Below are positions 4,401 to 36,579 of a stretch of DNA of 64,000 nt, piece by piece (position 1 is the first letter of the stretch; every line of letters starts with the position of its first letter). The position numbers were made by a program, and so were the translations under genes. Under the pieces are notes generated by a model. That model was not told the DNA's origin. It searched no databases and was given only the letters and a program-made list of their open reading frames with translations. The stretch comes from Macrostomum lignano. Lineage: Eukaryota. The stretch covers positions 46,406 to 110,405 of the forward strand of contig NIVC01000987.1 of NCBI GenBank assembly GCA_002269645.1, in the 5' to 3' direction.

Positions 4401-4818
4401 TAAACTCACCAGCCAACGACTTGCTGGCGCTGTAATTAGTGATGAGCCACTCGCTAATTATTCCGAAGCTGTTAATCACCGAGAAGATGGTGCCGTTGGT
4501 GCAGAATGAGGTGAAGCAGACCAGCCAAGCGACGCAGCCTCCATCAGCCGGGTGGAACTCCATTGCCAGATCAAGATTCTGTTCATCAGTTTGGGACAGT
4601 CGCTTTCCTAACGAGTCGCGACTTAAACGATCGATGCTTTTGGACGCTGGCTTGTCGTCTAACTCGGCGGACGGATCTCCATGACTGCTGCTGCTGCCAA
4701 CTTGAGCCGGGTCGATTTGTTCTTTGCTGTTTTTGTTGCTACAGTGATTGTCGAGCGCGTCAACGGGACTGAGACGCTGAAGTTGTATCTGAAATTCGAA
4801 ATGCATTATCGTAACCAT
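1480..4818 (-). CDS. Monocarboxylate transporter (SLC16/MCT family, MCT8/MCT10-like), multi-exon, with two lesions (possible pseudogene or assembly errors); 3' end not resolved
   Basis: Exons read by eye: 4410-4818, 3664-4285, 2736-3252, 1640-1746, 1480-1546. Motifs: DGGCVAWLVCFTSFCTNGTIFSVINSFG (MCT TM1 signature), TDRVGIR, GYFVPFVFL|PNF, GPLLAG|YINDVTNRWDVPFYLSG. Exon phases agree only if 1 nt is missing near 4261, and the donor at 3662-3663 reads AT instead of GT. Confidence 0.85.
1845..2690. repeat. 45-bp minisatellite in an MCT intron
   Basis: Unit AAATGACACCTCTCATTAGCCACAAAATGACACGTCAGACATCGG. Confidence 0.97.
3300..3590. repeat. 34-bp minisatellite in an MCT intron
   Basis: Unit ATGGCCATAGACAGCTGAGATATTGGTTGATAGA. 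Confidence 0.9.
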
Positions 4819-6480: not shown

Positions 6481-9400
6481 TCACTTCACAATGGCGTACA
6501 TCACCCAGTAGATGACGTTAAACAGTAAGAAACTGAGCGGAAACAACCGTCTAGCGATTTTATCAATTTTGCTGGCTCGGCTGACCATAACGACAGGCGG
6601 AATTCTCGAATAGTTTTCGATTCGACCGGACAGTTGCTGTGGTTGACTCAAAATGTCAGTTAACTTTGCTGATCGCTCATTAGTGATTGGGCACTTGTGA
6701 TTGAGTGAGTCTGCTCTGCTCATGGGGGACTGGAATTGGGAGGAGGGTTTTGTCAGCATGAAATTTGATCCTGACAGTCCCAATCCCGATCCTGATAGTC
6801 CCGATCCCGACCCTGACAGTCCTAATCCCGATCCTGACATTCCCGATCCTGATCCTGACAGTCTCGATCCTGACAGTCCCGATCCCGATCCTGACAGTCC
6901 CAATCCCGATCCTAACAGTCCCGATCCTGACAGTCCCGATCCCGATCCTAACAGTCCCAATTCCGGTCCTGACACTTCCGATCCTTCATAAAGTCCCAGT
7001 CCCGATCTTTACAGTCCCGACCCATTTATTTATTTTTTAATTCTGGATCTGACCATTCCTACCTAGACACGAATTTTCATCTGTATTCATGCTAAACTAT
7101 ACTCGCGTATACTACTACAACAATTAAATATAAGTAGTCAGAAACGAAAATTTTTACAGAAAAAGAAAACTTACAAAGCCACTAGTGGAGGCTTCGGGTT
7201 CAATGCTGACACTGCAGCAGCTGCTACTTTGATAGAAATTGTCTTGTATCCTTGCAGCCTTCAACACTGACACTGTCGGTTGCTGCTGCTGCTGCTGTTG
7301 CTCATGTAATTTTTGCTGTTCTGTCTGCTTTCGCAACTGCAATCTGCGCTGTTCGTTCGTGTCTTTCCTACTGTAAACATTGACAACGGCGAATTCTAAC
7401 AGCGAGGCGAACACAAATATGAGACAGACACTCATCCACACGTCGATGGCCTTGATGTAGGAGACTCTGGGGAGGGATTGACCAGCTCCTGACGACTGCG
7501 TTGTCATGGTGAGCACTGCCAAGGGAAAAGGGATTGTATTTTTAGGATGGGATCATTTCACCTCTATCAGTCGGTTAGAAGACAGGGTGACTAGAAGACA
7601 GACTGACTAAAAGACAGAGTGACTAGAATTCAGACTGACTAGAATTCAGAGTGGCTTGAAGATAGGGACTAGAATTCAGGGTGACTAGTATTCAGAGTGA
7701 CTAAAAGACAGAGTGACTAGAAGACAGAGTGACTAGAAGACAGTGTGACTAGAATTCAGACTGACTAGAATTCAGAGTGGCTTGAAGATAGGGACTAGAA
7801 TTCAGGGTGACTAGTATTCAGAGTGACTAAAAGACAGAGTGACTAGAAGACAGAGTGACTAGAAGACAGTGTGACTAGAAGACAGAGTGACTAGAAGACA
7901 GAGTGACTAGAAAAAACAGTGACTAGAAGACAGAGTGAATAGACGACAGAGTAACTAGAAGACACAGTGACTAGAAGACCGAGTGACTAGAAGACAGAGT
8001 GACTAGATAACAGAGTGACTAGAATTCAGAGTGACTAGATAAAAGAGTGACTAGAAGCAGAGTGACTAGATAACAGAGTGACTAGAAGGCATCTCAGTGC
8101 CTAGAAGACAGAGTGACTAGAATTCAGAGTGACTAGAAGGCAGAGTGCCTTGAAGACAGAGTGACTATAATACAGAGTGACTATAATACAGAGTGACTAG
8201 ATAACAGTGACTAGAAGGCAGAGTGCCTAGAAGACAGAGTGACTAGAATTCAGAGTGACTAGAAGACAGAATGACTAAAAGTTTCTAAGAATGTATTTTA
8301 CAAAAGTCACATTTTCAAAACTAATTTCCTTTTTCGAAAGATTGAAAAAAGAGCTCAAGCTACAGTTTCTTGAAAAATTTTTGTGCTCATAGACTGGGTC
8401 ATCAGCAGTTCCAGGCCCTCACCTGTGAGCAGTCCAAGACTGACCCTGGCCGGTATCGCTTCGGTGTTAATCCAGAATGCAACCCAGCTGAGAATGACTA
8501 TGAGCACAGTTGGTATGTACACCTGTGGGAAATTGAATAAGAGTATATTTTATCATCTAATTATTCTTAATCAAATTTTTCCCCTAGGCTGCCTCTGAGA
8601 GTGTTGCTCACTTGGATAATAAAATAACCGATGTCTCGTCGCAGAATGAAGTCCACCTGCAGGCAGGGATAACTCCCAGTAGTGTAGTTCTTTGAGCAAT
8701 CTCTGGTTGGGTAGCCGATGAGTACAAACTGTGGCATGCTGAGTTCGTCAGTAGATTCTACGGACTTGTTCACCAGCCACTTGAATACCACCGTTTTCAT
8801 GGTGTGACCGACTGCCGAGCGGAGGTTTTGGTGGGATGGTTGAGAGTAAGATTTGTGAGGGTGAGATCGGTGAGAGTGAGATAAGTGAGATTGAGATGGG
8901 TGAGAGTGAGATAGATAAGAGTGAGATGGAAGAGTGGGATGGGTGAGACTGAGATGGGTGAGAGTAGTGAAATGGGAGAGGGTGAGATTGATGAGAGTGA
9001 GATTTTTAAGGGTTAAGATGGTTGAGAGTGAGATGGGTGAGAGTGATTTGGGTGAGATTGAGATGGGTGAGAGTGAGATTTTTTAGGGTGAGATAAGCGA
9101 GAGTGAGATGGGGGTGAGAGTAGTGAAATGGGTGAGGGTGAGCTGGGCGAGAGTAAGATTTGTGAGGGTGAGATGGGTGAGAGTGAGATGAAGAGAGTGA
9201 GATAGCTGAGAGTGAGATGGGTGCTGAGAGTGAGATTGGTGAGAGTGAGATTTTTGAGGGTGAAATGGGTGAGAGTGATTTGGGTGAGAGTGAGATTTTT
9301 TAGGGTGAGATAAGTGAGTGAGAGGGGCGTGAGAGTAGTGAAATGGGTGAGGGTGAGATGGGCGAGAGTAAGATTTGTGAGGGTGAGATGGGTGAGAGTG

Positions 9401-15294: not shown

Positions 15295-15660
15295 TAATCT
15301 TCAAAGATGGCATCGAGCCTTCGAGGATGGCATCCATGCTGAAAAATATGGCATCTAGCCTTCAAAGATGGCATCCAAGCTTAAAAAATGGCATCGAGCC
15401 TTCAAAGATGGCATCCAAGCTTAAAAAATGGCATCTAGCCTTCAAAGATGGCATCCAAGCTTAAAAAATGGCATCGAGCCTTCAAAGATGGCATCCAAGC
15501 TTCAAAGATGGCATCCAAGCTTAAAAAATGGCATCGAGACTTCAAAGATAGCATCAAATCTTCAAAAATGGCATCCAATCTTCAAAGATGGTATCCAACC
15601 TTCAAAGATGGCATCCAACATTCAAAGATGGCATCCAATCTTCAAAAATGACATTCTAAC
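15295..15660. repeat. TTCAAAGATGGCATCCAAGC minisatellite
   Basis: Direct inspection. Confidence 0.9.
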
Positions 15661-16004: not shown

Positions 16005-16360
16005 AGGCGGCTCTTGGTGGGCGCCCCTGTCTCTTGGTGGGCGCCCCTGTCTCTTGGTGGGCGCCCCTGTCTCTTGGTGGGCGCCCCTGTCTCTTGGTGG
16101 GCGGCCCTGTCTCTTGGTGGGCGCCACTGTCTCTTGGGTGGCGCCCCTGTCTCTTGGTGGGCGCCCCTGTCTCTTGGTGGGCGCCTCTGTCTCTACTTAT
16201 CTCCTACTGGCGCTTCTGTCTCTTAGTTGGCGCCCCAGTCTCTTGGGTGGCGCCCCTGTCTTTTGGTAGGCGCCCCTGTTTCTTGGTAGGCGCCCCTGTC
16301 TCTTAGTTGGCGCCCCTGTCTCTTGGGTGGCGCCCCTGTAGCTTGGTAGGCGCCCCTTTC
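16005..16360. repeat. About 20-bp GGTGGGCGCCCCTGTCTCTT minisatellite
   Basis: Direct inspection. Confidence 0.92.
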
Positions 16361-17192
16361 TCCTGGGCCGGTGGACGCCACATCCACGAGGTGGCGAAAT
16401 TTGAGCTCCTGTCATTCACGAAGCTTGATTATCTCTCTTTGATAAAACTATTAGTCGAAGTAATCGGACTTACTTAGTATCTGCAACCGACCAGACAGTG
16501 TTGCACGCCAATATTACAACAAGGATGAAGACTTTACGGGTGATTTTTAAAGATGGCATGGCTGCTCAATGTTGATGCACCGATAATTAGCTAACGGAGC
16601 TGCCAATAAGCTGATCCTTCATCTGTAGGGCTGAGACTACCTTTAGTGTTGCCGAAATGATAGAATGAATGCTCAATGTCAGTGCTTCAATTTCTACTCG
16701 CAGATATAACTTTAAAAAGACCTTTTTAAAAAGTCTTTCAGAGACGAGCCAATCGGAGACGGGTTTTGACTCAAAGCGACATGAATTTCTGCACCCAACC
16801 TCCCGCCGCGTACAAAATCGAATGTACACCCAGCCCTAATTGCAAATTTGACCAGAATCTAATAGATTTTCTGGCCTAGTGCATTACATACTACTCATTT
16901 TACATTGGGGTCAGAGTAGTACTGTAGTAGCATGAACACTTGACTATAACTGTAGTGAACAACCCAAGTTTTTTACAGAAATTCGTAGGTCTGTGGGGTT
17001 CGCACAGATACGTGCGGTGAGGATACACTGCGATTCATTCTAAAAACGACTAAATGTTTATGTATTACAAGTGATTAGGTCGAAGAGTTATCTGGACTGA
17101 CCATGGAATTTCCGTGGAGTAAGACCCGTGCAATGTACATTATATTCGATTCTGGACTGAGTTAGTCTTCCGGTTGACCCACCCTCACACGT

Positions 17193-19316: not shown

Positions 19317-19479
19317 TTCGTTGCTAAACTTATTACAGCTTTGTCTAAGAACATCAGTTTTCCTGGAAAGTTGCAACCTTCTCGATTAAGTGTTCATGCA
19401 AAACTTTATTACTGTACATCAAAACCCTCTCAAGCATATACTTTGACTTCCGGTTGGGCTAACCTTAAAGTTCTGAGAA

Positions 19480-19795
19480 TCTGGGATCGGGATCTGAGAT
19501 GTGTATCTGGAATGGGGATCTGAGATGTGTATCTGGAATGGGGATCTGAGATGTGTATCTGGAATGGGGATCTGAGATGTGTATCTGGAATGGGGATCTG
19601 GGATGGGATCTGAAATGGGGATTCGGAATGGGGATTTGGGATGGGGATCTGGAATGGGGATCTGGGATGGGGATCTGGGATGGGGATCTGGGATGGGGAT
19701 CTGGGATGGGGATCTGGGATGGGATCTGAAATGGGGATTCGGAATGGGGATTTGAGATGGGGATCTAGGATGAGGATCTGGGAAGGGGATCTTGA
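19480..19795. repeat. GGATCTGGGATG-type minisatellite
   Basis: Direct inspection. Confidence 0.9.
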
Positions 19796-20637
19796 ATGAG
19801 GATTTAGAATTTCTTTACATAATTGTGCAGTTTTAATTGTGCTTCGGTTTTCCTGAACAAATACTAACAAAAGGAGAACCTCGCGTCAAAGGACTTTCCA
19901 CCGGTGGTTCAGTTGTCTCTTGCGATTAGTTCGTCAAGCAATCAGTTAGCTAAGTTTAAGAGTTCTCAGGACAGCCCATGTAATTTCCATGAAAGTGAAC
20001 CTGTACTATGCACATTGCATATAAGACTTTTTTGTGAGCTATCTTCTTTTCACGCGCATTTAACATGGGATTAAGTGAGTTTGAAGTATAGCAAAGCATC
20101 TGAAAGTTGGTTACTAAAATATCTGGAAATGAATAACGGAATAAGCGACGATTCAGTTTACTGTAGGTTCTCAGCATGTATAATTTTTTTAGCTAATGAC
20201 AAAAATCTTCGCGAATGAATACAGATCTGCTGTACAGTGGACAGATATTGAAATTAATACAACATTTTCATAACAATTTCCGTCTTTCCGATTGTCAATA
20301 GACGTCGCTAGCTAATATGTCAGTCTTTTATACTACACTAATATATAAACGCTGTTATACGTCTGCAAAACGTCGGTTAAATATAAAAGTACCCATTTCC
20401 CAGCGACGCTGTATCGGCTTCAGATAGCTTAGGCTTGAGGGTCTCCAATTATAACGGTCTTGCTATATGCATCTAGCTAGTATCAACAACTGAAAACACG
20501 CTGAGTACGTAATCGAATGCAGTTGCAAAACGGTATCAGCTCGTGAATTTTGCTGAGAACTTTGAACTGCAGCAGTAAACGTTACAACAGTTAATTTACT
20601 TTACTTTAATTTTCAGAGACATATCCTTCACAATCGC

Positions 20638-21576: not shown

Positions 21577-21894
21577 TTAATTGTATTGTCTTTTGTTGAA
21601 GTTTATAATTTGCTGAGTTGATTTGTAAGTATCCAATGATTTTCTGCTGATTTATTTGCAAGAGGAGGAGAATTCATCCAGACACTTGCTCACAATTTAT
21701 ATTTTTTGCTATAGTGCATTTTTCAATGCTTTAATGGGAAGAGAAATGAAAATGAAGACTGTTTTATTGGTCTTGGAATTTCATGGCTTGGCCTCTCAGC
21801 TCATGGACGTTTAAATACTTGTATCCTCATGTGGACAATGCAGCTGCTTAGGGCTAACCTTCAGTGTCCTAGATAGTCCTAAGTGCTTACTGAC

Positions 21895-24800
21895 CACACA
21901 TGTCTTGAAGCCCTTTAAAGGTGAAAATAAAGTCAGCCTGAAATGACAATAATTTACACACTCATCTGGACCTTAGCACAACATATGTGCAATTTCAAAA
22001 AAATCTCCCGAGCTATCTCTGATTTACAGCACTTTATTACCATATGACCTAATTACTATTGGTTTTCAATATGCGTGATGCAAAAAATGAGTTTCTACAA
22101 GAGTTTGTGAAATTTGAAAAAATGATCCTAAAACAAGTCAGAAACTTTTCATTATAATTCATAGGTATGCCATCACCTTACAAAGTCCAAAGTATAAAGT
22201 ATAAATTGAAACATCAATGAATAATTGTGACTAAATGTAACAAAAAACAGCATAAACACTCGTACAGTACAGAGAATGCTACATAAAAGTGGACAAAGAA
22301 GCATTGCGCAAAATTGTGCGTGAGTGATGCAAGGCATGGAGAGAATATTATCCCAGATATTTTTCTATCGCTTGCTTTTGAGTTGTAGCTATTATTCCCT
22401 CCTCATACGTAGCTACCATCTCATTGGCTGTGAGCCTGTAAATTTGCTGCACAGCTCTCGTATTCATGCCATTTTGGCCCTTGGAACCATAGGCATATCC
22501 TTCTATTAAATACTGCTGAGTTTTCAAAGGAAGCTATTCCCTTTCCATGATGATAGGTAAGAACAAGGACTTCTGCGATATAAGTTTACCATAGAAAGAA
22601 TTAAATTAAGGTTTCCACCAGCTACCTAATGTATTCCTATCATTAATTCAATAATAAATAAAAGAAAAAATAACTTTAGGGTCCTATCGGGATAAGAGAA
22701 TAGCTAGCGATCCTCTAGTCTCTTTTAGATTTCATTTTCTAGTCAACTAACTATCTCTATGCATGCATTGCAAAGCTAGAATGGAATTTTGAAATGCGGA
22801 CATTGTATTTCGGTGGGTTGAATGGGTAAGATAACACGCTTTTTGAAAGATTCCAATTATTTACTTCCTGTTTATGTTCTGTTTAATTTCGCTTTCCAGT
22901 CTACAGGGTCTGACTAAGAACTATTTGTTCATCCCAATAAAGAGAAATGTATAATCCTAATTCGCAGTCTTGATTGATTTAGCTAGTTCACATTTTGTTT
23001 AGGCATGACGAGAGCAGTATGCAACAACACACTTGCGCAGTCGATCTGGATACGATGGATGATGAAAATCAATCCGAAAGTCTTGCCACATGCTGCTGAA
23101 ATCGTGGTGTGCAGTCTCAACCACCTGCTCAGACCAGAAACCAAGTCCCTTCTTGGGTTCTCCAGCTAGATTGGACATGTTCAAAAACTGGACAACGTGG
23201 TCAATAACAGCGTGGACTTTCGGGGTGACGCGGATTCCAAGATCGATATAGGCTTGTTCGAATGCCCGGACTCGATTCTCAAAGTCTCCACACACACTCA
23301 TACCAAAGCACGAAGCCTTCACATCGCGGAAGCAGCGTAGGGCATGAGCTACAGGCATTGCCGAAAACACATTGTGCTGAGCCAGCATTGCAATCAAAAT
23401 GTCGACGCCATTTAGAAGACACTCGCAGGCGTTTCCGGCAAAGTTCCCACCGTTCTGCAATGGTCGTCGAAGGCCAAGCTGCTGTAGCCAGTCATCGGTG
23501 CTTATCTGACAGTCTTCGAGTCCTCGCAGTTGAGTTTCCAGTTCTTCGAATAGTCGATTGGTCACGCCAAGCAAGAGATGCAGCCCCATTGGTGGAATGG
23601 CCTGGAGCACCATCGTGCTGTCTGGAACTTCGAGCAGAGGAGGACGCACACAGTTTTTGAAAGCAGCAGCAGACACGTTGCGCGGCGCTTTTTCTTCTAC
23701 AGTGCGCTGGTACTCAAATGCCTGTAGCCGAATACCGCCGATCGATCTCAACACGTTCGTGCGGTCTGGATTAGAAAAATCGATCCTGGCAGTCTCACAC
23801 CAAGGGCAGGGATGGGTGCTGCTGCAGCACTGAAGTCCCAGGATCGCATTCGAAATTTTCATATCAACTGCTGCACAGAATGAAAATCCTTGCAAATTAA
23901 GAAGATTCAGGATCTGCTGCAGATTATCGTAGGACTCGGAAACAGATTCGGCAATGGCAAGCAGGAGCAGTTTACGGACTCCTCCATCCTCAAAATGGAA
24001 ACGGCATGCGCCTTCTGCGTACGTGCTGCGACTTCCGGTAGGTTGATCTTTTAAACCTTGAGCAGACACAATGCTAACACAAAACTTCAAGAAGCCGCCT
24101 CCACTGTCGATGCCAACTTTAATCAATGCGCCGTCATCTGCACTGACCTGACGACGTGCCATCACTCTGTCAATCAGAGCCAGAGGATCAGTGCAGAATA
24201 CAATGCTGCGCATTTCCCTTTTTCCTTTGGCACAGTCCATCTCTAGGTTAGTCAACTCAAACAAATCATCTAGAGCAGAGTCGATGGCGCTCAGTTTGCT
24301 GCGCAAATTTGGCTCAATGCTCTTGCGTCCTTTCCATGCTCGAAAAAATTGGGCGGCCAACTTAGTTTGCCGACCGCTCAAACACAGCGTCTGCTGGAAT
24401 CGGCTGAATTCCTCTGCTGGTACGGCGCAGCCACCTCTCATTGATGTAGAACTACCAGCCCGTTGCCCAACACACACTGTAAGATCACGACCTCTAGTTG
24501 CCAATTGAAATCTAGAGTTTGAGCCGGTGGAAGCAGCCTTAGCTTTGATCACGTCACTTGCGTGGATTTCGGCACCTCGACGGTCTAGCGACAACTTACT
24601 GAATAGATTTTCTCGTCGCTGTGTTTGCGTGCAGTAGTGAGGCAAACCTCTGCCAACCATTGAGTGGCAGCGCTGGCAGATGACAACAGGTTGTGCCGGT
24701 GGCAGACCATGATCTGGATCCGAACACGCGGGTCGTCCAAGCGAATGTGGCTCTGGTTTCCATTTTCCCAGTCCTTTCCCAATCGGGTTGAACCGGGCAG

Positions 24801-25710
24801 TCTCACATATTTTGCAAGCACAACTGCTGGACTGTCGCGTAATCTTTGTTGGGCTCACCTTTACGACCTCAGAGGAGTTCGGCAAAACATTCGGCGCTTT
24901 TATGCCCTTGTCGACGTCAGCCAGAAGCTTGTTGCATCGGGCACAGAGTGCTGCAGGTAGCTGCTCATCATTCGCATTGTAGTTGGGCAAAAAGTGTGCC
25001 TGAATGCGTTTCAGCGAGGCATTACCTATTCGTTGCATTGATGAGCCCTTTTTGTAGCACAACAAGCAGATCTTGAGGCGATTTTCTTCGTGTGATAGTG
25101 CATGCGTTGCATGGCTCATTTCTTTATACATGTATGGCAAGGTGAGTAGAAATATTGAAAGTAGGCTTGATCGAAGCTCACTATGGACTGCAAGTCAAGT
25201 CACTAACAAATACAGGTCGAGCTTGGTTTGTGAAAAGAAATCGTGCCTTGCAGAATTTATTATCAATTGATTTTATTATACAAGTAGGAAGCATACAACC
25301 AACATGCCTATAACAATCTAGAGTCAAGTACACTGGACAGAGCATACTCAAGCTCATGGGCCAGAGGGACCAAATTTGAGTACATTGGCAAAGCCACACA
25401 ACCCAAACCCCCGCTGAGTTACATGAAACTTTATATTTGTTGCATCATCTAAGTTGGTTTACTAAAATTGAAATCGGCTATCACTGGTTTAACTTACATG
25501 TACCTTGATCTACGGTTCTACTCATATGTACAATCAATGCAAATCATACATTATCACAAGCTATGGAATGAAGTACTTATGAATGGAGATAGCTCGGTAG
25601 ATTTTTTTAAAATTGCACGTATACCTTGCTAAGGTTCAGGTGAATGCATAAATCACTGTCATTTGAGGCTGACTTTATTTTCACCTTGAGAAGGCTTCAG
25701 GACATGTGTG
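21895..25710 (-). mobile_element. Full-length Chapaev-like DNA transposon (CMC superfamily), 3816 bp
   Basis: Imperfect 125-bp TIRs at 21895-22019 and 25586-25710 (about 19 mismatches by eye), termini CACACATGTC...GACATGTGTG, 4-bp TSD TGAC at 21891-21894 and 25711-25714, and a single internal transposase ORF. Confidence 0.92.
22999..25131 (-). CDS. Chapaev/Transib/RAG1-core-related DDE transposase (710 aa from first ATG)
   Basis: N-terminal H-x7-CxxC...P-x3-CxxC...CxCxxC zinc-binding region (HEENRLKICLLC, LPAALCARC, CACKIC). Core motifs VGIDSGGG, AVDMK, HPCPWC, LHLLLG, TPKVH..IDHV, WSEQVVETAHHDF. No stops or frameshifts. Confidence 0.88.
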   Translation of the reverse strand: MYKEMSHATHALSHEENRLKICLLCYKKGSSMQRIGNASLKRIQAHFLPNYNANDEQLPAALCARCNKLLADVDKGIKAPNVLPNSSEVVKVSPTKITRQSSSCACKICETARFNPIGKGLGKWKPEPHSLGRPACSDPDHGLPPAQPVVICQRCHSMVGRGLPHYCTQTQRRENLFSKLSLDRRGAEIHASDVIKAKAASTGSNSRFQLATRGRDLTVCVGQRAGSSTSMRGGCAVPAEEFSRFQQTLCLSGRQTKLAAQFFRAWKGRKSIEPNLRSKLSAIDSALDDLFELTNLEMDCAKGKREMRSIVFCTDPLALIDRVMARRQVSADDGALIKVGIDSGGGFLKFCVSIVSAQGLKDQPTGSRSTYAEGACRFHFEDGGVRKLLLLAIAESVSESYDNLQQILNLLNLQGFSFCAAVDMKISNAILGLQCCSSTHPCPWCETARIDFSNPDRTNVLRSIGGIRLQAFEYQRTVEEKAPRNVSAAAFKNCVRPPLLEVPDSTMVLQAIPPMGLHLLLGVTNRLFEELETQLRGLEDCQISTDDWLQQLGLRRPLQNGGNFAGNACECLLNGVDILIAMLAQHNVFSAMPVAHALRCFRDVKASCFGMSVCGDFENRVRAFEQAYIDLGIRVTPKVHAVIDHVVQFLNMSNLAGEPKKGLGFWSEQVVETAHHDFSSMWQDFRIDFHHPSYPDRLRKCVVAYCSRHA

Positions 25711-27039
25711 TGACCTCTGTCACCCATGAGAGAGCGTCCTCACTTCTGCTCTGGCCACTCAATCCATTATTATAACTAAATGTTAGAGACGGGGGGCCAA
25801 GGCATTCCTGAGTGATATTGAGCCAAGTTGACTTTTTCACAGCAATAGAGCATTGAGTTCTAGAGATACGCCAAACATTGCAAGTTTTAGGCGCCCTGTC
25901 GTCCGTGTTGAGTACCCGTAAGTTTTTTCAACAATAAAAGGCTTATATAAACAATCAGAAGTTCATCAATTACTTAATTTTCGACTAGCAATTAGTCTAA
26001 ATTATTAAAATTGATTTGTGGTGTAGTGTATGCGAGGTGCGAACACAAATTAAGGTATACATACTATACACAATAGTTTTCACACCGTATAAGTCACTTT
26101 AATCATTTCAAATCTGCATGAATGGTGAATGTAAGTTTAGCTGTGTGGATTATGTCATATACACTACCTTGATTGCACGTCAGCTGGGCCCCAATAACTT
26201 TAGCGCACCCTCCCTTCTTTCCCTATGATTCCTGTGATGACTCATGCTTATCGCCCACCACATTCCCCCGCGCGCCACCGCACCGATTCTTTCTTTTTTG
26301 AAATCATTCATGCGTGTGACAGTTTTATGACCCCTATTTTCCCTCCTATCTTTCCCAAGCTTTATCCTGCCTGTTACGTTACCACTCAAATTTCTCGTCC
26401 AATCACATCGGGGCTGACGAGTGACGTCATCAGGGTTGCTTGGTACAGCGGAGGTCAAGGACAAGTCACGGCCTTCAATATCACACGCATGACGCTCACG
26501 TGATCGCATGACGCATGATCTCGGGGCTAGAAATAAGAGTGAATAGGGTGTCTTTCAAACAGCCCGGGCCTGCTGTCCAGATAATGGAATCTTTGCCGCA
26601 ATGTCAGCTACCGCACCATCCAGAGGCGGACAGTCTAGGGACGAGGTCTGGTAGCTATATACATGTAGCTGTACCTTTCAGCGTTGCCCAGGGGTTGCGC
26701 AAGGTGTTTTAATATAGCCCCGGGTGACGTCAACGTGCATGTTCGTGGATATTATACGATAGACACTGTTTATGAAAAATAAATGCAATTACAAGAGCCT
26801 TGTGGGCCAGTAGCTTCGCGAGTGAAAGATTGCTCAAATCAATTCGCATGTACACTAGCATTTGAAAAATTCAGATTCGTCTTCGAACAATGACTTATTG
26901 TATTTCTGTTGTGCATTTTCATTGTGTGCATATTTCATTAAAAATGCAAGAAGCTTTCATCAACTATATTTTTCAATCATAAACATTTTGTTTGAAAAAA
27001 TAAGCTAATAAGAAAATTCGTAGCAAAATACATCCTCAC

Positions 27040-27560
27040 TCTTCTCTTCCGCCTTCTCTCTTCTCTTTCCTTTCTCTTTTCTTTTCTCTGCTCTCTTCTC
27101 TTCCCTCTCTACTCTCTCATGTCTCCTCTCTACTCTCTCATATCTGCCACCTCTCTGCGTACTCTCTCTGTTCTCACTTCTCCTCTCTCCCTTCCCACCT
27201 CTCTCCCCTCTCCCCTCGCTTCTCTCCCATCTTCTCTCCTCTCTCCTCTCCTCTCTCCTCTCCTCTGCTCTTCTCTCTGATCTCTCTCCTCCCCTCTTCT
27301 CTTCTCTTCTCTTCTACCTTTTCTCTCATATCGAATCTCTCGCCTCTCCTCTGTTTGCTTGTCTTTAATCTTCTATTCCCTCTCATTCGAAGTAAGAAAA
27401 TTTTCCGACATTTTTGCTGAAGATAAGAGAAGAGGGGAGAGAGAAAAGGGGGGAAGAGGGGGAGAGAGGGGAGAGAGAGAAGGGAAAGGGGAGAGTTAGG
27501 AGTGGAAACAAAGATAAAAGAGGGGAGAAAAAAGGCGAGGCAAGAAGGTAGAGCAGAAGG
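27040..27560. repeat. Pyrimidine-rich then purine-rich low-complexity tracts
   Basis: CT-rich 27040-27330, GA-rich 27420-27570. Confidence 0.8.
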
Positions 27561-30260: not shown

Positions 30261-33200
30261 ATGCATGGCACACAATTTGCCAGTGATGACAATTCTAATG
30301 ACTATAATGGGCTAATAAATGGCAATGTATCTGGTCAAATACTTTTGCCTGTTGCATCTGGATCTCATAGCAATAGGAATGCTTCAACTACTAATATATC
30401 TGCAAATTTGCCAAGCAGAGCTAGTCCAACTAATAACAATGATGATGTGTTTGTGAAGCATCATAGATCAGTAGTTCAACAAGATGGCATTGAGCCAGCT
30501 CAAGTTCAGGCTGTTTCAAACCCTATTTATGGTGAGTGTAGAAAGTACATTTAATTGTTTTTAGGTATTGTCTCTGAGAAAACTCTAATTGGGAAGTATT
30601 AGGGAAGATTAGAAAGAATCTGAATGAAAAATGTAAATAATATTGATAAGATTTTGAATGTGAAATGTTAGTGGAATCGGGAAGAATCTAAATGGGGAAT
30701 GTTGGTGGGATTGGGAAGAATCTAAATGGGAAATGTTGGTGGAATTGGGAAGAATCTAAATAGGAAATGTTGGTGGAATTGAGAAGAATCTAAATGGGAA
30801 ATGTTGGTGGGATTGGGAAGAGTCTAAATGGGAAATGTTAGTGGGAGTGGGATTGGGAAGAATCTATATGGGAAATGTTATTAGAATTGGGAAGAATCTA
30901 AATGGGAAATGTTGGTGAAATCAAGAAGAATCTAAATTGGGAATGTTGGTGGGATTGGGAAGAATCTAAATGGGAAATGTTGGTGGAATTGGGAAGAATC
31001 TAAATAGGAAATGTTGGTGGAATTGAGAAGAATCTAAATGGGAAATGTTGGTGGGATTGGGAAGAGTCTAAATGGGAAATGTTAGTGGGAGTGGGATTGG
31101 GAAGAATCTATATGGGAAATGTTATTAGAATTGGGAAGAATCTAAATGGGAAATGTTGGTGTAATTGGGAAGAATCTAAATGGGGAATGTTAGTGGGATT
31201 GGGAAGAATCTAAATGGGAAATGTTAGTGGGATTGGGAAGAATCTGAATGGCGAATGTTAGTGGAATTGGGAAGAATCTAAATAGAAAATGGTGTTGGAA
31301 TTGGGAAGAATCGGATTCGGAAATGTCAGCCTAAATATCCACTTCGCAATCCCAAATTAATTGCCAACAGTGAATCTGGACATCAAAGTTGAAGATGCGG
31401 ATCAAACCGCTGTGGAAAGCGCCTGCGGAAGTTCATCATCAGACGAATCTTCAATTTTTGTGCCATTCTCATTTCGAGCATTGAGTAGAAAACGAAAACT
31501 GCTGCTCGTATCGCTTTGCCTTGGCGAGCTGTGCTCAAATGTTATGTTATCAATTATGGCACCATTTTTTCCTAGCGAAGCTGAGTCCAAAGGCGTCTCA
31601 AGTACGGTTAGCGGATGGATATTTGGTGTTTTACCATTGGCTCAAGTAATATTCAGCCCTATTGTTGGTGAGTGACTCCTGTTAGTTGACTGACATTATG
31701 TACATCGTAGCTGAGCTAGGGGCTGCCCATTTCACCGACTCCCTTGAGCAGGCACACAAGCGCGCGGATACGTACGCAGTCATACGCACAGGCACACACT
31801 CACACAGGAGTGCACAGCGGCCCTAACTTTATTTATCATTAGGCATGTACACTTCACTGTGCCTTGGGGGTTGGCCTTCAATTGGGAGCTAATTGCACGA
31901 GCAAAGCCAAGCCGAGATTCCAATTTAGCTCCAAACTAGCAATCTGGTGCCCCCTTCGGGCGCCCAAAAAAGCAAGGGACAAAAACATTTATATAAATCC
32001 TATCTGCCTTGACACCCAAGCAATTCCCCCAGTAAGCCTCGACATCTCAGCGATTCCCCCGAGCAAGCATCTCCTCAGATAGCAAGCATCCCCCCGATAT
32101 CAAGCATCCCCCCAGATAGCAAGCATCCCCCCAGATAGCAAGCATCCCCCCAGATAGCAAGCATCCACCCAGATAGCAAGCATCCACCCAGATAGCATCT
32201 CCCGGATTCTCCCCAGATAGCAAGCATCCCCCAGATAGCAAGCATCCCCAGATAGCAAGCATCCCCAGATAGCATCTCCCCAGATAGCAAGCATCCCCAG
32301 ATAGCATCTCCCCAGATAGCAAGCATCCCCAGATAGCATCTCCCCAGATAGCAAGCATCCCCAGATAGCAAGCAGATATCAAAGCGCCGCGCTTAACCAC
32401 TGGACTGTTCATAAATTTTTTACTACTAACTATAAACTAAAAGTAGAAATCGAAGCAAATTGTTGCCTAAATTAACCAGGGTGTTTTGATGGATCAATAT
32501 TTAAGCACGATCAATAATCGTGCAATTTCTTGAGAGGAGAAGACACAAGAAATAAGAAGATATACGAGATAAGAGATGGCGAGAAGAGAGCTGAGAAGAG
32601 ACATTAACCTTAATAACGGGCCGGATTGTTATTGTAAAATTTCAAGAACTTGAGTATATTTTAAAATAAAAAATCCAATTTTTACTAAACTACTAGCAGT
32701 AGAAAAACAGTAGAAGTAAATTGCTACCCTAATTCAAAAAAAGCAAACAAAACTCATACTGAATCCCATTTTCAGGCGCCATGATGAAGCCTGCCGGCGT
32801 GAAGTTCCTCTTCCTATCTGGCGCTTTCTTGGGCGGTTGCGCCACTATACTATTTGGTGCGTTGGATCATATGCCTAGCCGGGACGGCGGTCTCATGTTC
32901 ATTATTTATTGCTTTGCAATACGAATAACTACAGCTTGGGGCTTCGCTTCCTATACAACCGCCGCGTTTGTTATCATAGCGCAAGAGTTTGGCGACAACG
33001 TGTCTCAGGTGTTTGGCATTGCTGAGACTTTCTGCGGCATTGGCGCCGTATTAGGACCGGCTGTTGGCGGCGTTCTTTACGGCTGGGGCGGCTTCGGCCT
33101 GCCTTTCTTTGTGCTGGGCGGCATCTACCTGCTCACTGTGCCGCTCAGCTGGCCGCTCATCCCGTCCGATGCAGAGTCTCATCACGGACAGGTGTCCAAC

Positions 33201-36200
33201 TTCACCCTGCTGAGGGTGCCAGGTGAGCTCTCGGATTTTGTGTCTGTCTGTCTGCCTGTCTGTCTGTCTGCCTGTCTGTCTGTCTGTCTGTCTGCCTGTC
33301 TGTCTGTCTGTCTGCCTGTTTTAGTGTCTGTCTGTCCGTCTGTCTGTCTGTCTGTCTTAGTGTCTGTCTGCCTGTCTGTCTGTCTGCAGCAGCCAGCTTC
33401 CCCCACCCCTCCCCATCAGGCATCCTCATGATGTGCTGGACAGTAATAGTGCTGGGAACCGGCTGGTCAATATTCGAGCCGGTGCTGGAGCCTCGCTTAG
33501 GCAGCTACAACTTGAGTCCTCAGCTCATCGGTTTAGTCTTCCTACTGACTGCCTCATCCTACGCTTTATCCGCCCCGTTATTCGGTTGGATTACTGAACG
33601 GATTGACGATTTAAATCCGTTGATTCTGGCCAGTCTAGCCGGCTGCACCGCCTGTTTAGCCATGCTGGGCCCGTCGCCTTTGTTCACTAACAATGCACCG
33701 GATAGCGCTACTGGCAGTCTGGCTCTGATCATTGTGTCACTGGCTCTGCTGGGCCTGTTCAACTCTATGGGCATCGTGCCGAGCTATGAGTATATGCTCG
33801 ATGCTGCGGAGTGAGTGCAGTTTTCTTTGGGATGTCATTGAAATCTAAATGGGATTTGGTTAGTTCACGAATGGGATTTTGAGATTTCTGGGATTTCTTA
33901 AGATGGGATCTTCTGAGATTTGTAAGGATGGGATCTGGGGATTTCTAAAGATGGGATATTCTGGGGATTTCTAAAGATGGGATCTTCTGGGGATTTCTAA
34001 AGATGGTATCTTCTGGGGATTTCTAAAGATGGTATCTTCTGGGGATTTCTAAAGATGGGATCTTCTGGGGATTTCTAAAGATGGGATCTTCTGGGGATTT
34101 CTAAAGTTGGTATCTTCTGGGGATTTCTAAAGATGGGATCTTCTGGGGATTTCTAAAGATGGGATCTTCTGGGGATTTCTAAAGTTGGTATCTTCTGGGG
34201 ATTTCTAAAGATGGGATCTTCTGGGGATTTCTAAAGATGGGATCTTCTGGGGATTTCTAAAGATGGGATCTTCTGGGGATTTCTAAAGATGGGATCTTCT
34301 GGAGATTTCTAAAGATGGGATCTTCTGGGGATTTCTAAAGATGGTATCTTCTGGGGATTTCTAAAGATGGGATCTTCTGGGGATTTCTAAAGATGGTATC
34401 TTCTGGGGATTTCTAAAGATAGGATATTCTGGGGATTTCTAAAGATGGGATCTTCTGGGGATTTCTATAGATGGGATCTTCTGGGGATTTCTAAAGATGG
34501 GATCTTCTGGGGATTTCTAAAGATGGTATCTTCTGGGGATTTCTAAAGATGGTATCTTCTGGGGATTTCTAAAGATGGTATCTTCTGGGGATTTCTAAAG
34601 ATGGGATCTTCTGGGGATTTCTAAAGATGGGATCTTCTGGGGATTTCTAAAGATGGTATCTTCTGGGGATTTCTAAAGATGGGATCTTCTGGGGATTTCT
34701 AAATATGGGATCTTGATATTTCTAAAATGGAATCTTGGGATTTCTAAAGATGGGATCTTCTGTCTGGGATTTCTAAAGATGGGATCTTGGGGTTTCTAAA
34801 TTTGGGATTTTTTTGGATTTTTAAAGATGTGATTTTTTGGGATTATTTTGGAAATAATATAATTATTATTAACAAATTTTCAGAGAAGCTGGCCTTCCAG
34901 ACGACGTGTCCGTTCACGGAGCAATTGGCGGTCTGTGGGGCTCGGCCTACGCGTTCGGGTAAGATTTACAAATCATATTCGCTACTCATTACTTATTCAA
35001 TTTGAGTAGTATTAAATCTATGTATTAGTAATTATCGAATTATAATCTGATTTTCAAAATCTTTTAACAGCGAATTTGTCGGTCCCATTGCTGGCGGCTT
35101 TCTGGTTGACATTTCTTCGTTTGGCTGGGCCACCACCGCAGGCGCTGGCCTCTCTTTGATATCAGTAATGCGTTTTTCACGGCTTGTTTATTATTTGTTT
35201 TATTGTTCCGAACTTGGACTAATTTCTCGTGACCTTGGATGACCCCTTGGTTCTCTGTTTCTTGGGGCGTGTGCTTGCCACCTTGACCTCAGTTAACCCG
35301 TAGTTTTGTGTTCCCGCACGCACACATAAAGCATGTTATCTCGATCGGATGACCCTGTCCATGGATCCCTTAATCTAAAACCCTAATCTACCTACCCTAA
35401 TCTACTTCCTCCGTGACCTCAGATGACCCTTCTTTGCTCATACATGTACTTCGCTAACCTAAAACCCTCACCCCGTCACCTCAGATGACCCTGCTCACGC
35501 ATCGCTAACCTTGTGACCTCAGATGACCCTGCTCACGCATCGTTAACCTACAACCCTCACCCCTGTGACCTCAGATGACCCTGCTCGTGCATCGCTAACC
35601 TACAACCCTCACCCCCGTCACCTCAGATGACCCTGCTCGCGCATCGCTAACCTACAACCCCTCACCCCGTGACCTCAGATGACCCTGCTCACGCATCGCT
35701 AAGCCACAAACCTCACCCTGTGACCTCAGATGACCCTATTCCTAGTGTTCGTGCTCATCCAGCGCTACCAGAAGCGATTGCACCGTCGCACGGCCGTCAG
35801 CGCCGCGGCCGCTGCCACAGTTGACGCCGTTACCGCCGTATCGACAGCCGCAGGCGCCGCCACAGCCGCCGCAACGCTGGTCCAACCGGTGCCATTCCGA
35901 CGTCGCTCAGTGTCGTTCCTTCGTGCCACCAGCCTGCTGCAGCTGCAGCGGCAGCGCTCAATGCAGGCCGGAGCCGCCGGCTCTTTTGTCGACGGTTGTC
36001 GGACGCCATCGTCGGATGTCGGAGGCTACCGACACCGGCTGTTGCCCAGGCGTCAGCGTCGCTCTACGTTGGATCCTCGGCGTCGAAGCAACGATCGACG
36101 TTTTCGCCGCGGCGTCAGCGTCGGCTGCGAAGACGACGACAACAACGACATCGGCAACCTCGGTGGTGAGGCGTCACCGGCCACTTCAACGCCGCCCAGG

Positions 36201-36398
36201 GCGCCGCCGCCGATGCCAGGTGCGGTGGTGTCACCGCCCACTGACGAGGAGCTGCGAGAGGCAGCGGAGGCGGTTACGGCGGCAGCGGCGGCGGCGGCGA
36301 CAAAATGCACGCGTCGACAGAATGTCCACGACAACGAGAAGTCGCCGTTGCTGTCGCCATGCAGCGATCAGATTGATCAGCGGCGCGGCTCCTGGTGA
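30261..36398 (+). CDS. SLC18B1: MFS-type transporter, SLC18B1-like
   Basis: Exons 30261-30531, 31371-31667, 32776-33222, 33420-33810, 34884-34958, 35071-35164 and 35730-36398 are GT-AG with consistent phases. Motifs: SIMAPFFPSEAESKGVS, GIAETFCGIGAVLGPAVGGVLY.WGGFGLPFF, GLPDD, GLWGSAYAFGEFVGPIAGG. Confidence 0.85.
30650..31315. repeat. 34-bp minisatellite in SLC18B1 intron 1
   Basis: Unit GGGAAGAATCTAAATGGGAAATGTTGGTGGAATT with a higher-order block duplication of about 240 bp. Confidence 0.95.
31722..31935 (-). mobile_element. SINE internal fragment in an SLC18B1 intron
   Basis: Same body sequence, through GCCAAGCCGAGATTCCAATT. Confidence 0.8.
32050..32375. repeat. CCCCAGATAGCAAGCAT minisatellite
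   Basis: Direct inspection. Confidence 0.92.
33235..33388. repeat. (CTGT)n microsatellite in an SLC18B1 intron
   Basis: Direct inspection. Confidence 0.92.
33895..34800. repeat. 26-bp minisatellite (CTGGGGATTTCTAAAGATGGGATCTT)
   Basis: Direct inspection. Confidence 0.96.
35410..35737 (+). repeat. About 52-bp array built from the 3' splice site of the last SLC18B1 exon
   Basis: Seven CTCAG|ATGACCCT junction copies with ATG at 35423, 35485, 35523, 35575, 35627, 35679 and 35730. Confidence 0.9.
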
Positions 36399-36579
36399 TT
36401 CGAATCGAAGGCCATTCTGTATTTATTTTTTTTTCCTCAGCGGATGACCGCCTCCCGAAATTCTATGAATCATTCCTCTGATCCAGAGATCTGCATCTAT
36501 TTAATTGCCTGTTATTTGTTCTTAAATCTTCAGATGTTGTTGTCTATCAATTTGTTGATCCACTTTGAAATTTTAAGAT

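Follow-up and report, generated by a model that had tools for sequence, protein, structure and literature searches.

The 64,000-nucleotide stretch of the genome of the flatworm Macrostomum lignano analysed here (contig NIVC01000987.1 of assembly GCA_002269645.1, positions 46,406 to 110,405 of the forward strand; hereafter the window, with positions counted from its first letter) contains at 21895-25710 a 3,816-bp element that is very probably a complete, recently transposed DNA transposon of the cut-and-paste type, with one gene, and a member of the Chapaev group (called CMC-Chapaev in RepeatMasker). An original prediction, made from the letters of the window, had proposed a Chapaev-like transposon with a RAG1-related transposase at this place, and that assignment is borne out by a structure search, a profile match to RAG1, an N-terminal zinc finger of the Chapa kind, the motifs of the protein and homology to a Chapaev relative (P0043).

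Termini and inverted repeats

Direct reading of 21700-25900 shows an element that begins CACACATGTC and finishes GACATGTGTG; these are the CAC...GTG termini proposed initially and published for Chapaev elements, and they are present in all seven copies annotated in the assembly. Directly outside both ends lies the same tetranucleotide, TGAC (21891-21894 on the left; 25711-25714 on the right, where the next base is C). The terminal inverted repeats, originally described as imperfect arms of 125 bp with about 15% divergence, are measured here by a repeat finder (pair I1) as 144 nt each, ungapped and 81% complementary, one on the gene's 3' side (21895-22038, plus strand, starting CACACATGTC) and one on its 5' side (25567-25710, minus strand). 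Their outer limits agree with an 18-nt terminal motif that occurs twice in the window, both times at an element end (0.11 occurrences expected by chance), and with BLAST comparisons of the window copy and the six other copies, in which similarity ends exactly at the CAC and GTG termini (left end at 21895).

The left and right arms are identical at arm positions 1-10 and 24-45, and the same 12 left/right differences recur in the first 83 nt of every insertion. Because the same mismatches occur in all insertions, the 19% divergence between the arms is older than the spread of the family and inherent to it rather than a product of decay, as had been suspected when the ends were described as asymmetric rather than old. 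Between the arms lie a 3' non-coding part (22039-22998, minus strand), the transposase gene and a 5' non-coding part that separates the repeat arm from the ATG and presumably holds promoter and leader (25132-25566, minus strand); the G+C content is about 50% in the reading frame and 31-41% in the non-coding parts.

A single gene for a transposase with a Chapa domain

The sole long open reading frame (ORF) runs on the minus strand from 25131 to 22999 as one exon of 710 codons from the ATG plus a stop, and is uninterrupted, as first reported. Its product is identical to a hypothetical M. lignano protein annotated on NIVC01000987.1, and both its N- and C-termini align with those of homologues. 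No second ORF of at least 62 aa was found in the remaining 1.7 kb of the element (the longest are 61, 59 and 54 aa), the 3' non-coding part included, and the element therefore carries one gene.

The candidate catalytic and zinc-binding residues named in the original prediction were all located. The N-terminal finger contains CLLC (residues 22-25) and LPAALCARC (58-66), followed by GIDSG with D342, VDMK with D423, CPWC (442-445), KVHAVIDH with H640 and H645, and WSEQVVE with E668 and E672; the catalytic glutamate can now be refined to E672. Among 94 relatives (25-66% identity), D423, C442, C445, L517 and H518 are invariant, and D342, H640, H645, E668 and E672 are at least 90% conserved. The N-terminal zinc-finger domain, identified from the published Chapa alignment, spans residues 14-113 (24793-25092, minus strand; H14, C22, C25, C63, C66, C104, C106, C109), with cysteines that are invariant or nearly so in the relatives and a predicted local distance difference test score (pLDDT) above 90 in the model. 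After it come a conserved GRP motif (residues 132-134) and a putative small CCHC finger (residues 152-167, 24631-24678, minus strand; C152, C155, H165, C167), recognized from near-invariant alignment columns; together these could contact A/T-rich DNA. The predicted RNase-H-like catalytic fold, delimited by the model and by conservation, covers residues 335-431 (23839-24129, minus strand) and includes D342 (24106-24108) and D423 (23863-23865). The region of residues 442-672 (23116-23808, minus strand), delimited by alignment to RAG1, holds C442/C445, L517-H518, the H640/H645 zinc site and E672 as the putative third catalytic residue.

Relationship to RAG1

Conventional searches leave the protein nearly silent: a Pfam scan returns only sub-threshold noise (zf-AD, E 0.039) with no RAG1 or transposase family, and neither phmmer nor a 10-sequence profile finds a relevant match among PDB sequences. 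By sequence, RAG1 is reached only with the 94-sequence profile, which matches zebrafish RAG1 (E 1.1e-5), BbRAG1L (1.1e-4) and HzTransib (0.2), with nothing else below 0.3. An AlphaFold model built from the 94 relatives (pLDDT 90.1) gives 44 Foldseek matches in the PDB at E ≤ 0.001, all of them RAG1 (mouse, zebrafish) or amphioxus RAG1L, with a best E of 1.5e-14 and a template modelling (TM) score of 0.5-0.59 on the target; the next match after the 44 is at E 0.04. An earlier model of pLDDT 72 gave the same list plus HzTransib (E 4.8e-5), which falls outside the top 50 matches of the better model. Identity to RAG1 and RAG1L in the structural alignments is about 13%.

An hhalign alignment to the mouse RAG1 core, whose sequence was confirmed against PDB chains, agrees in register with the profile search. 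It pairs D423 with mouse RAG1 D708, C442/C445 with C727/C730, L517-H518 with L794-H795, GGNFAGN with NGNFARK, H640/H645 with H937/H942, and E672, the second glutamate of SEQVVE, with E962, and the CxxC begins 19 residues after the second aspartate in either protein. In the predicted model, strands and helices follow the order b1-b2-b3-a1-b4, with D342 in the first strand and D423 after the fourth; in the RNase-H arrangement of RAG1, D600 lies in the first strand. The order of the strands, together with conservation, points to D342 as the first catalytic aspartate, the counterpart of RAG1 D600. A low-stringency hhalign extension meant to align D342 with D600 misplaced the strand, at zero confidence, and was not used. 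As modelled, the transposase shares the fold and active-site layout of RAG1, the recombinase of vertebrate antibody genes.

Placement in the Chapaev group

The Transib superfamily has been defined to comprise Transib, TransibSU, Chapaev and Chapaev3 (Kapitonov & Koonin 2015, PMC4411706), and the Chapa domain is a complex N-terminal zinc finger found only in Chapaev-type transposases and in the N-terminal region of RAG1 (PMC4411706). Residues 14-113 of the window transposase fit the published Chapa alignment (HEENRLKICLLC ... LPAALCARC ... SCACKICETAR; PMC4411706 Additional file 5). Against this reference, a 13-sequence set on which E-values are indicative only and which was taken as text from optical character recognition (OCR) with small errors possible, the best matches belong to the subgroup of Chapaev transposases that lack a RING finger (Chapaev-1_HM, 32% over 104 aa, 43.5 bits; Chapaev-2_HM, 40.0 bits; Chapaev-1_AA, 35.4 bits), while Chapaev3, RING-bearing Chapaevs and RAG1 all score at most 19.6 bits. 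The full-length protein is 31% identical over residues 9-708 (E 2e-98) to P0043, a relative that is itself 90% identical to the published N-terminal segment of Chapaev-5_HM. Zhang et al. 2014 (PMC4079192) give as hallmarks of Chapaev termini of the form CAC...GTG, duplications of 3-4 bp and three motifs, C(2)C, LH and H(4)H. All are found here except that the length of the duplication varies; the motifs, which define Chapaev/CMC, are represented by C442-x2-C445, L517-H518 and H640-x4-H645, which lie between D423 and E672.

An exhaustive profile search returns a family of 6,711 representatives (clustered at 50%) at E ≤ 1e-3, with 994 at E ≤ 1e-30. The 20 relatives whose clusters were looked up stem nearly all from metagenome or Logan contigs of 2.5-4 kb, i.e., of transposon size, and bear no informative names; a second homologue search with the 94-sequence alignment recovered nine of the original ten sequences plus P0075. 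The transposase family is abundant in eukaryotes, yet has no Pfam model or informative name in the libraries searched. Three stretches of it also occur in P0086 (UniRef A0A1I8I628, 2,033 aa), named 'Arf-GAP with coiled-coil, ANK repeat and PH domain-containing protein 2', which is probably a chimeric M. lignano gene model that took in a transposon.

Several other classes and architectures were considered and set aside. EnSpm/CACTA elements have CACTA termini, a 3-bp duplication and usually two genes; membership is unlikely for an element with CACAC termini, duplications of 4-5 bp, one gene and no Pfam transposase family. Chapaev3 is likewise unlikely, the duplications being GTCA, TTAA, GGGTA, TAATA and TCTCC, none of the form TWA. 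A 12/23-type spacer asymmetry between the arms is ruled out by their ungapped alignment, and a hidden second gene by the absence of any further ORF of at least 62 aa.

Copies, age and mobility

The assembly annotates seven copies of the element (Mlig018049g1-g7), which fall into three lineages and stand at five insertion sites, each with flanks of its own. Lineage A consists of the window copy (L004) and L005, 99.76% identical, with the duplications GTCA and TTAA (4 bp each); lineage B of L006 and L007, 99.84% identical, with GGGTA and TAATA (5 bp each); and lineage C of L001 = L002 and L003, a single insertion represented on three redundant contigs, 99.97-100% identical, with TCTCC (5 bp). 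Copies of different lineages are 98.55-98.77% identical, and over the five independent insertions identity ranges from 98.5 to 99.8%, so that copies at different sites can differ by as little as 0.16-0.24%. Like the window protein, three related variants that are 99% identical are annotated M. lignano proteins. By these pairwise identities, a comparison that the original prediction had proposed, the family is young.

Variation among the five independent insertions is unevenly spread. The coding sequence (CDS) has 1.55% variable columns and no indels; the non-coding parts, inverted repeats included, have 2.8% variable columns and 26 indel columns on the 3' side (21895-22998) and 3.45% and 13 on the 5' side (25132-25710), 39 indel columns in all. 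The 33 variable codons comprise 22 synonymous and 11 non-synonymous changes on 493 synonymous and 1,637 non-synonymous sites, i.e., a ratio of non-synonymous to synonymous substitution rates (dN/dS) of about 0.15 (binomial P = 1.3e-7 for so few non-synonymous changes under neutrality). Judged from this ratio, its P value and the lack of CDS indels, the lineages diverged while the transposase was under purifying selection, the pattern to be expected when functional copies give rise to the new ones.

The full ORF is kept in five of the seven copies. A nonsense variant, R172* (CGA>TGA at codon 172), is common to L006 (4735-8563) and L007 (4736-8563), which stand at different sites, and its simplest reading is that a defective lineage-B copy was moved in trans by transposase from another copy. 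The near-identity of the five insertions, the purifying selection and the presence of a nonsense variant at two sites together support recent, though not necessarily current, transposition of the family in the M. lignano lineage and fit the earlier suggestion of a recent, potentially active element. The lesions in host genes cited in the original prediction play no part in this reading. The window copy is one of the intact, probably autonomous, ones.

Length of the target-site duplication

Taken at face value, the duplications are 4 bp at two of the five sites and 5 bp at three, and the 4-bp duplication that had been put forward as a Chapaev feature does not hold for the family as a whole. At the window site (GTCA/TGAC) the flanks are identical as first described, but an exact 4-bp duplication is one of two readings: with TGACC on the right and TGAC|CAC at the left junction, the duplicated sequence may be TGAC or, with one C missing from the C-run, TGACC. 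L006 can likewise be read as GGTA or GGGTA across a one-base run at the junction, and L001/L002 have TCTCC where L003 has TCTC. In the window copy, L006 and L001/L002, the terminal C or G of the element abuts the same flank base, and a run-length error of a single base would alter the duplication length. The duplications of L005 (TTAA, 4 bp) and L007 (TAATA, 5 bp) are unambiguous, and because these two sites are free of homopolymer ambiguity, both 4-bp and 5-bp duplications exist in the family. A length of 4 bp is thus not a fixed hallmark of this family, and '4 bp = Chapaev' is not a clean diagnostic. Mixed lengths have precedents: RAG1/2 transposition in vitro yields mostly 5-bp and some 4-bp duplications (PMC1131882), and duplications of 2-5 bp have been reported in the EnSpm-Mirage-Chapaev-Transib clade (Kojima 2025, PMC12730594).

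L003 (NIVC01003948.1) differs from L001/L002 mainly by many single-base gaps: there are 31 gap openings over 1,647 nt of flanking DNA, and one of the gaps is a C at the junction. It looks like an unpolished redundant contig. Given these gaps, single-base errors evidently occur in the assembly, which calls for caution with single-base junction calls.

A-rich blocks in the arms and a candidate mechanism

Both arms carry two A-rich blocks. The outer one is a 22-nt block, AAGGTGAAAATAAAGTCAGCCT, identical in the two arms (21918-21939, plus strand; mirror 25666-25687), which contains the 9-mer AAAATAAAG 22 nt from the CACACAT end. The inner one is AAAAAAATC at arm positions 103-111 (21997-22005, plus strand; mirror 25600-25608, minus strand), two of the five occurrences of this string in the whole window. 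The same string has been published as the consensus 'nonamer' in the repeats of Transib (PMC1131882).

A second M. lignano family, represented by locus L008, encodes a transposase (P0003) that is 49% identical to that of the window, and its repeats align with the window arms over about 125 nt with both A-rich blocks kept and AAAAAAATC conserved at about equal distance. The repeats of both families have one A-rich block close to the end and, some 100-120 nt in, a second of the form TTTYAAAAAA(A)TCTNCCGA. The L008 repeats (4503-4718 and 7655-7870) are 216 nt long and 99% identical; the outermost 11 nt of that element are unlike between its two ends (4492-4503 versus 7870-7881), and its right flank is a (TCTG)n repeat. 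These patterns make the A-rich arm blocks candidate transposase-binding sites, and the shared A-rich block together with AAAAAAATC may form a bipartite recognition site that resembles a recombination signal sequence (RSS) at a non-RSS spacing.

By analogy with RAG1, ProtoRAG and Transib, the transposase would bind the CACACATGTC ends and the conserved subterminal A-rich blocks of both arms, pair the two ends and nick at the CAC border. The element would then be released, probably through hairpins on the flanking DNA, and its 3'-OH ends would be joined to the target at positions staggered by 4 or 5 nt, and repair would turn this stagger into the 4- or 5-bp duplication.

Weighing the alternatives

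A number of points count against a recently mobile Chapaev element. The placement in Chapaev rests on one named relative and an OCR'd published alignment; the published hallmark of 3-4 bp is exceeded at three of the five sites, where the duplication measures 5 bp; the match of D342 to D600 is made from strand order and conservation, without a confident residue alignment; and empty sites reconstructed for the insertions gave no junction-spanning match in the DNA examined. We also know of no Chapaev element for which the hairpin mechanism has been shown biochemically. The 5-bp duplications are a hallmark of Transib and RAG transposition (PMC1131882), and together with a fold that matches RAG1 best and the Transib 'nonamer' string in both arms, they could be taken to indicate a canonical Transib element or a RAG-like (RAGL) transposon instead. 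We consider this very unlikely, given that the protein has a Chapa domain whereas canonical Transib transposases consist of the core only (PMC4411706), that its full-length identity is 31% to the Chapaev-5_HM-like protein versus about 13% to RAG1 and RAG1L, and that the HzTransib profile score reaches only E 0.2. Moreover, the 1.7 kb outside the ORF, in which no ORF reaches 62 aa, leaves no RAG2-like second gene, the distance of AAAAAAATC from the heptamer-like end is 95 nt instead of 23 nt, and the arms have no 12/23-type length asymmetry.

If the element is a Chapaev transposon, it could still be a dead relic that has not transposed recently: the genome is partly polyploid and its assembly redundant, and recent duplication of the whole genome or of segments would then account for the copies. 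M. lignano loci are indeed represented redundantly, the insertion L001/L002/L003 being found on three contigs with near-identical flanks, and the missing empty site would fit; yet the four other insertions have unrelated flanks and duplications of their own (GTCA, TTAA, GGGTA and TAATA) and so arose by insertion, copies at different sites differ only slightly, the full ORF survives in most copies, and purifying selection on the CDS is not expected in dead ones. This makes the relic improbable, though the least improbable of the three alternatives. An intact ORF that evolves under purifying selection and carries a gene annotation would also suit a domesticated, transposase-derived host gene, but such a gene would not be expected to be bounded by inverted repeats and duplications, to occur at five unrelated sites as a 3.8-kb unit conserved in full and precisely up to its CAC and GTG ends, or to have spread in a nonsense variant as well, and we give this explanation almost no weight. 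A recently transposed Chapaev-group transposon remains the best account of the element.

Genomic surroundings

The element lies between an MFS-transporter gene (starting at 30261) and a ligand-gated ion-channel gene (starting at 16559, minus strand), outside the annotated coding regions of both. Within the MFS gene region, where a 550-aa MFS_1 product is called at 30261-36400, a 148-aa exon-like ORF (32781-33431) has no protein match in an index of 5.8 billion sequences; it runs into a (TGTC)n microsatellite (33241-33386), and the annotated MFS model may splice differently. Minisatellites with units of 13-34 nt in 17-25 copies are dense nearby (15299-15654, 16011-16366, 19479-19803, 27053-27327, 30657-31326 and 32062-32374), one of them an array of 19 units of 34 nt in the first intron region of the MFS gene.

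Significance

Chapaev elements share with RAG1 a catalytic core and an N-terminal zinc-finger region, and to our knowledge none has been studied biochemically. The link between RAG1 and Chapaev has been in print since 2007-2015, and the present findings do not overturn current views. No paper linking Macrostomum with a Chapaev element was found in the literature searched, which did not cover Repbase. M. lignano is a flatworm with established transgenesis, and an intact, young, multi-copy Chapaev family in such a host is a practical candidate for excision and integration assays and possibly a genetic tool, well suited to asking whether Chapaev uses the hairpin route of RAG and Transib. The mixture of 4- and 5-bp duplications blurs a character that separates Chapaev/CMC from Transib, and the annotation gains a name for the 'hypothetical proteins' Mlig018049g1-g7 and the related Mlig010790 family.

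It is possible, though we hold this only tentatively, that the family is still active and that its transposase natively makes both 4- and 5-nt staggers on ends composed of a heptamer-like CAC and A-rich, 'nonamer-like' blocks. If so, it would represent a living intermediate between the behaviour of Chapaev (3-4 bp) and that of Transib and RAG (5 bp), and would provide the first experimentally tractable Chapaev transposase, in which the Chapa region of RAG1 and nonamer-type recognition could be seen as they were before domestication.

Comparison with known systems

The transposase resembles the RAG1 core and the RAG1L of amphioxus ProtoRAG in fold (PDB 5zdz, 9jpu, 3jbw and 6b40; Foldseek E 1e-14 to 1e-8) and RAG1 in the kind of its N-terminal Chapa finger, where RAG1 reads C-D-I-C-N-T-A-R and the window protein C-K-I-C-E-T-A-R. 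It is only about 13% identical to RAG1 and RAG1L, has no RAG2 partner gene and no RING finger, and belongs to a mobile, multi-copy element with long imperfect repeat ends lacking 12/23 asymmetry, not to a host recombinase. RAGL, ProtoRAG and TransibSU elements have a RAG2-like gene inside their repeats and more than 30% identity to the RAG1 core; here, there is no second ORF of at least 62 aa, and identity to RAG1 and RAG1L is of the order just given.

With canonical Transib (HzTransib, PDB 6pqy/6pqn), the element has in common CAC ends, a DDE core, a CxxC/HxxxxH zinc site, the AAAAAAATC string and, at three of five sites, 5-bp duplications. It differs in its Chapa domain, in the spacing of its A-rich motifs and in a match that is weaker than that to RAG1. 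Canonical Transib elements make a 5-bp duplication, have a 38-bp end composed of CACAATG, a 23-bp spacer and AAAAAAATC (PMC1131882), and encode a transposase with no extra N-terminal domain (PMC4411706); the window element ends in CACACAT followed by AAAATAAAG after 22 nt, with AAAAAAATC only at arm position 103.

Chapaev3 (Chapaev3-1_SM of Schmidtea; Merrow, Garfield and Conan) falls in the same wider group; its ends are likewise CAC...GTG, it has the motifs C(2)C, LH and H(4)H as well, and this sub-lineage is already known from a flatworm host, the planarian Schmidtea. Chapaev3 inserts between A and T and duplicates 3 bp of the form TWA (PMC4079192), whereas none of the five sites here has such a duplication, and its Chapa finger (C..FCY(I/V)CG...DCYFC) matches that of the window protein weakly, at no more than 19.6 bits.

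The RING-less Chapaev subgroup of Repbase reportedly includes Chapaev-5_HM, Chapaev-1_HM and Chapaev-2_HM from Hydra magnipapillata and Chapaev-1_AA from Aedes aegypti, as described by Kapitonov and Jurka in 2007. The window element departs from it in its host phylum (Platyhelminthes), in an identity of only about 31% and in having 5-bp besides 4-bp duplications (3-4 bp in Chapaev; PMC4079192). Like this subgroup, it encodes a protein without a RING finger in one ORF (about 660-710 aa), and the two have in common CAC...GTG ends, the motifs C(2)C, LH and H(4)H, and the Chapa pattern HEENR-x-(V/I)C-x-LC ... P-x3-C-x2-C ... C-x-C-x-IC-x-(T/I)A(R/K).

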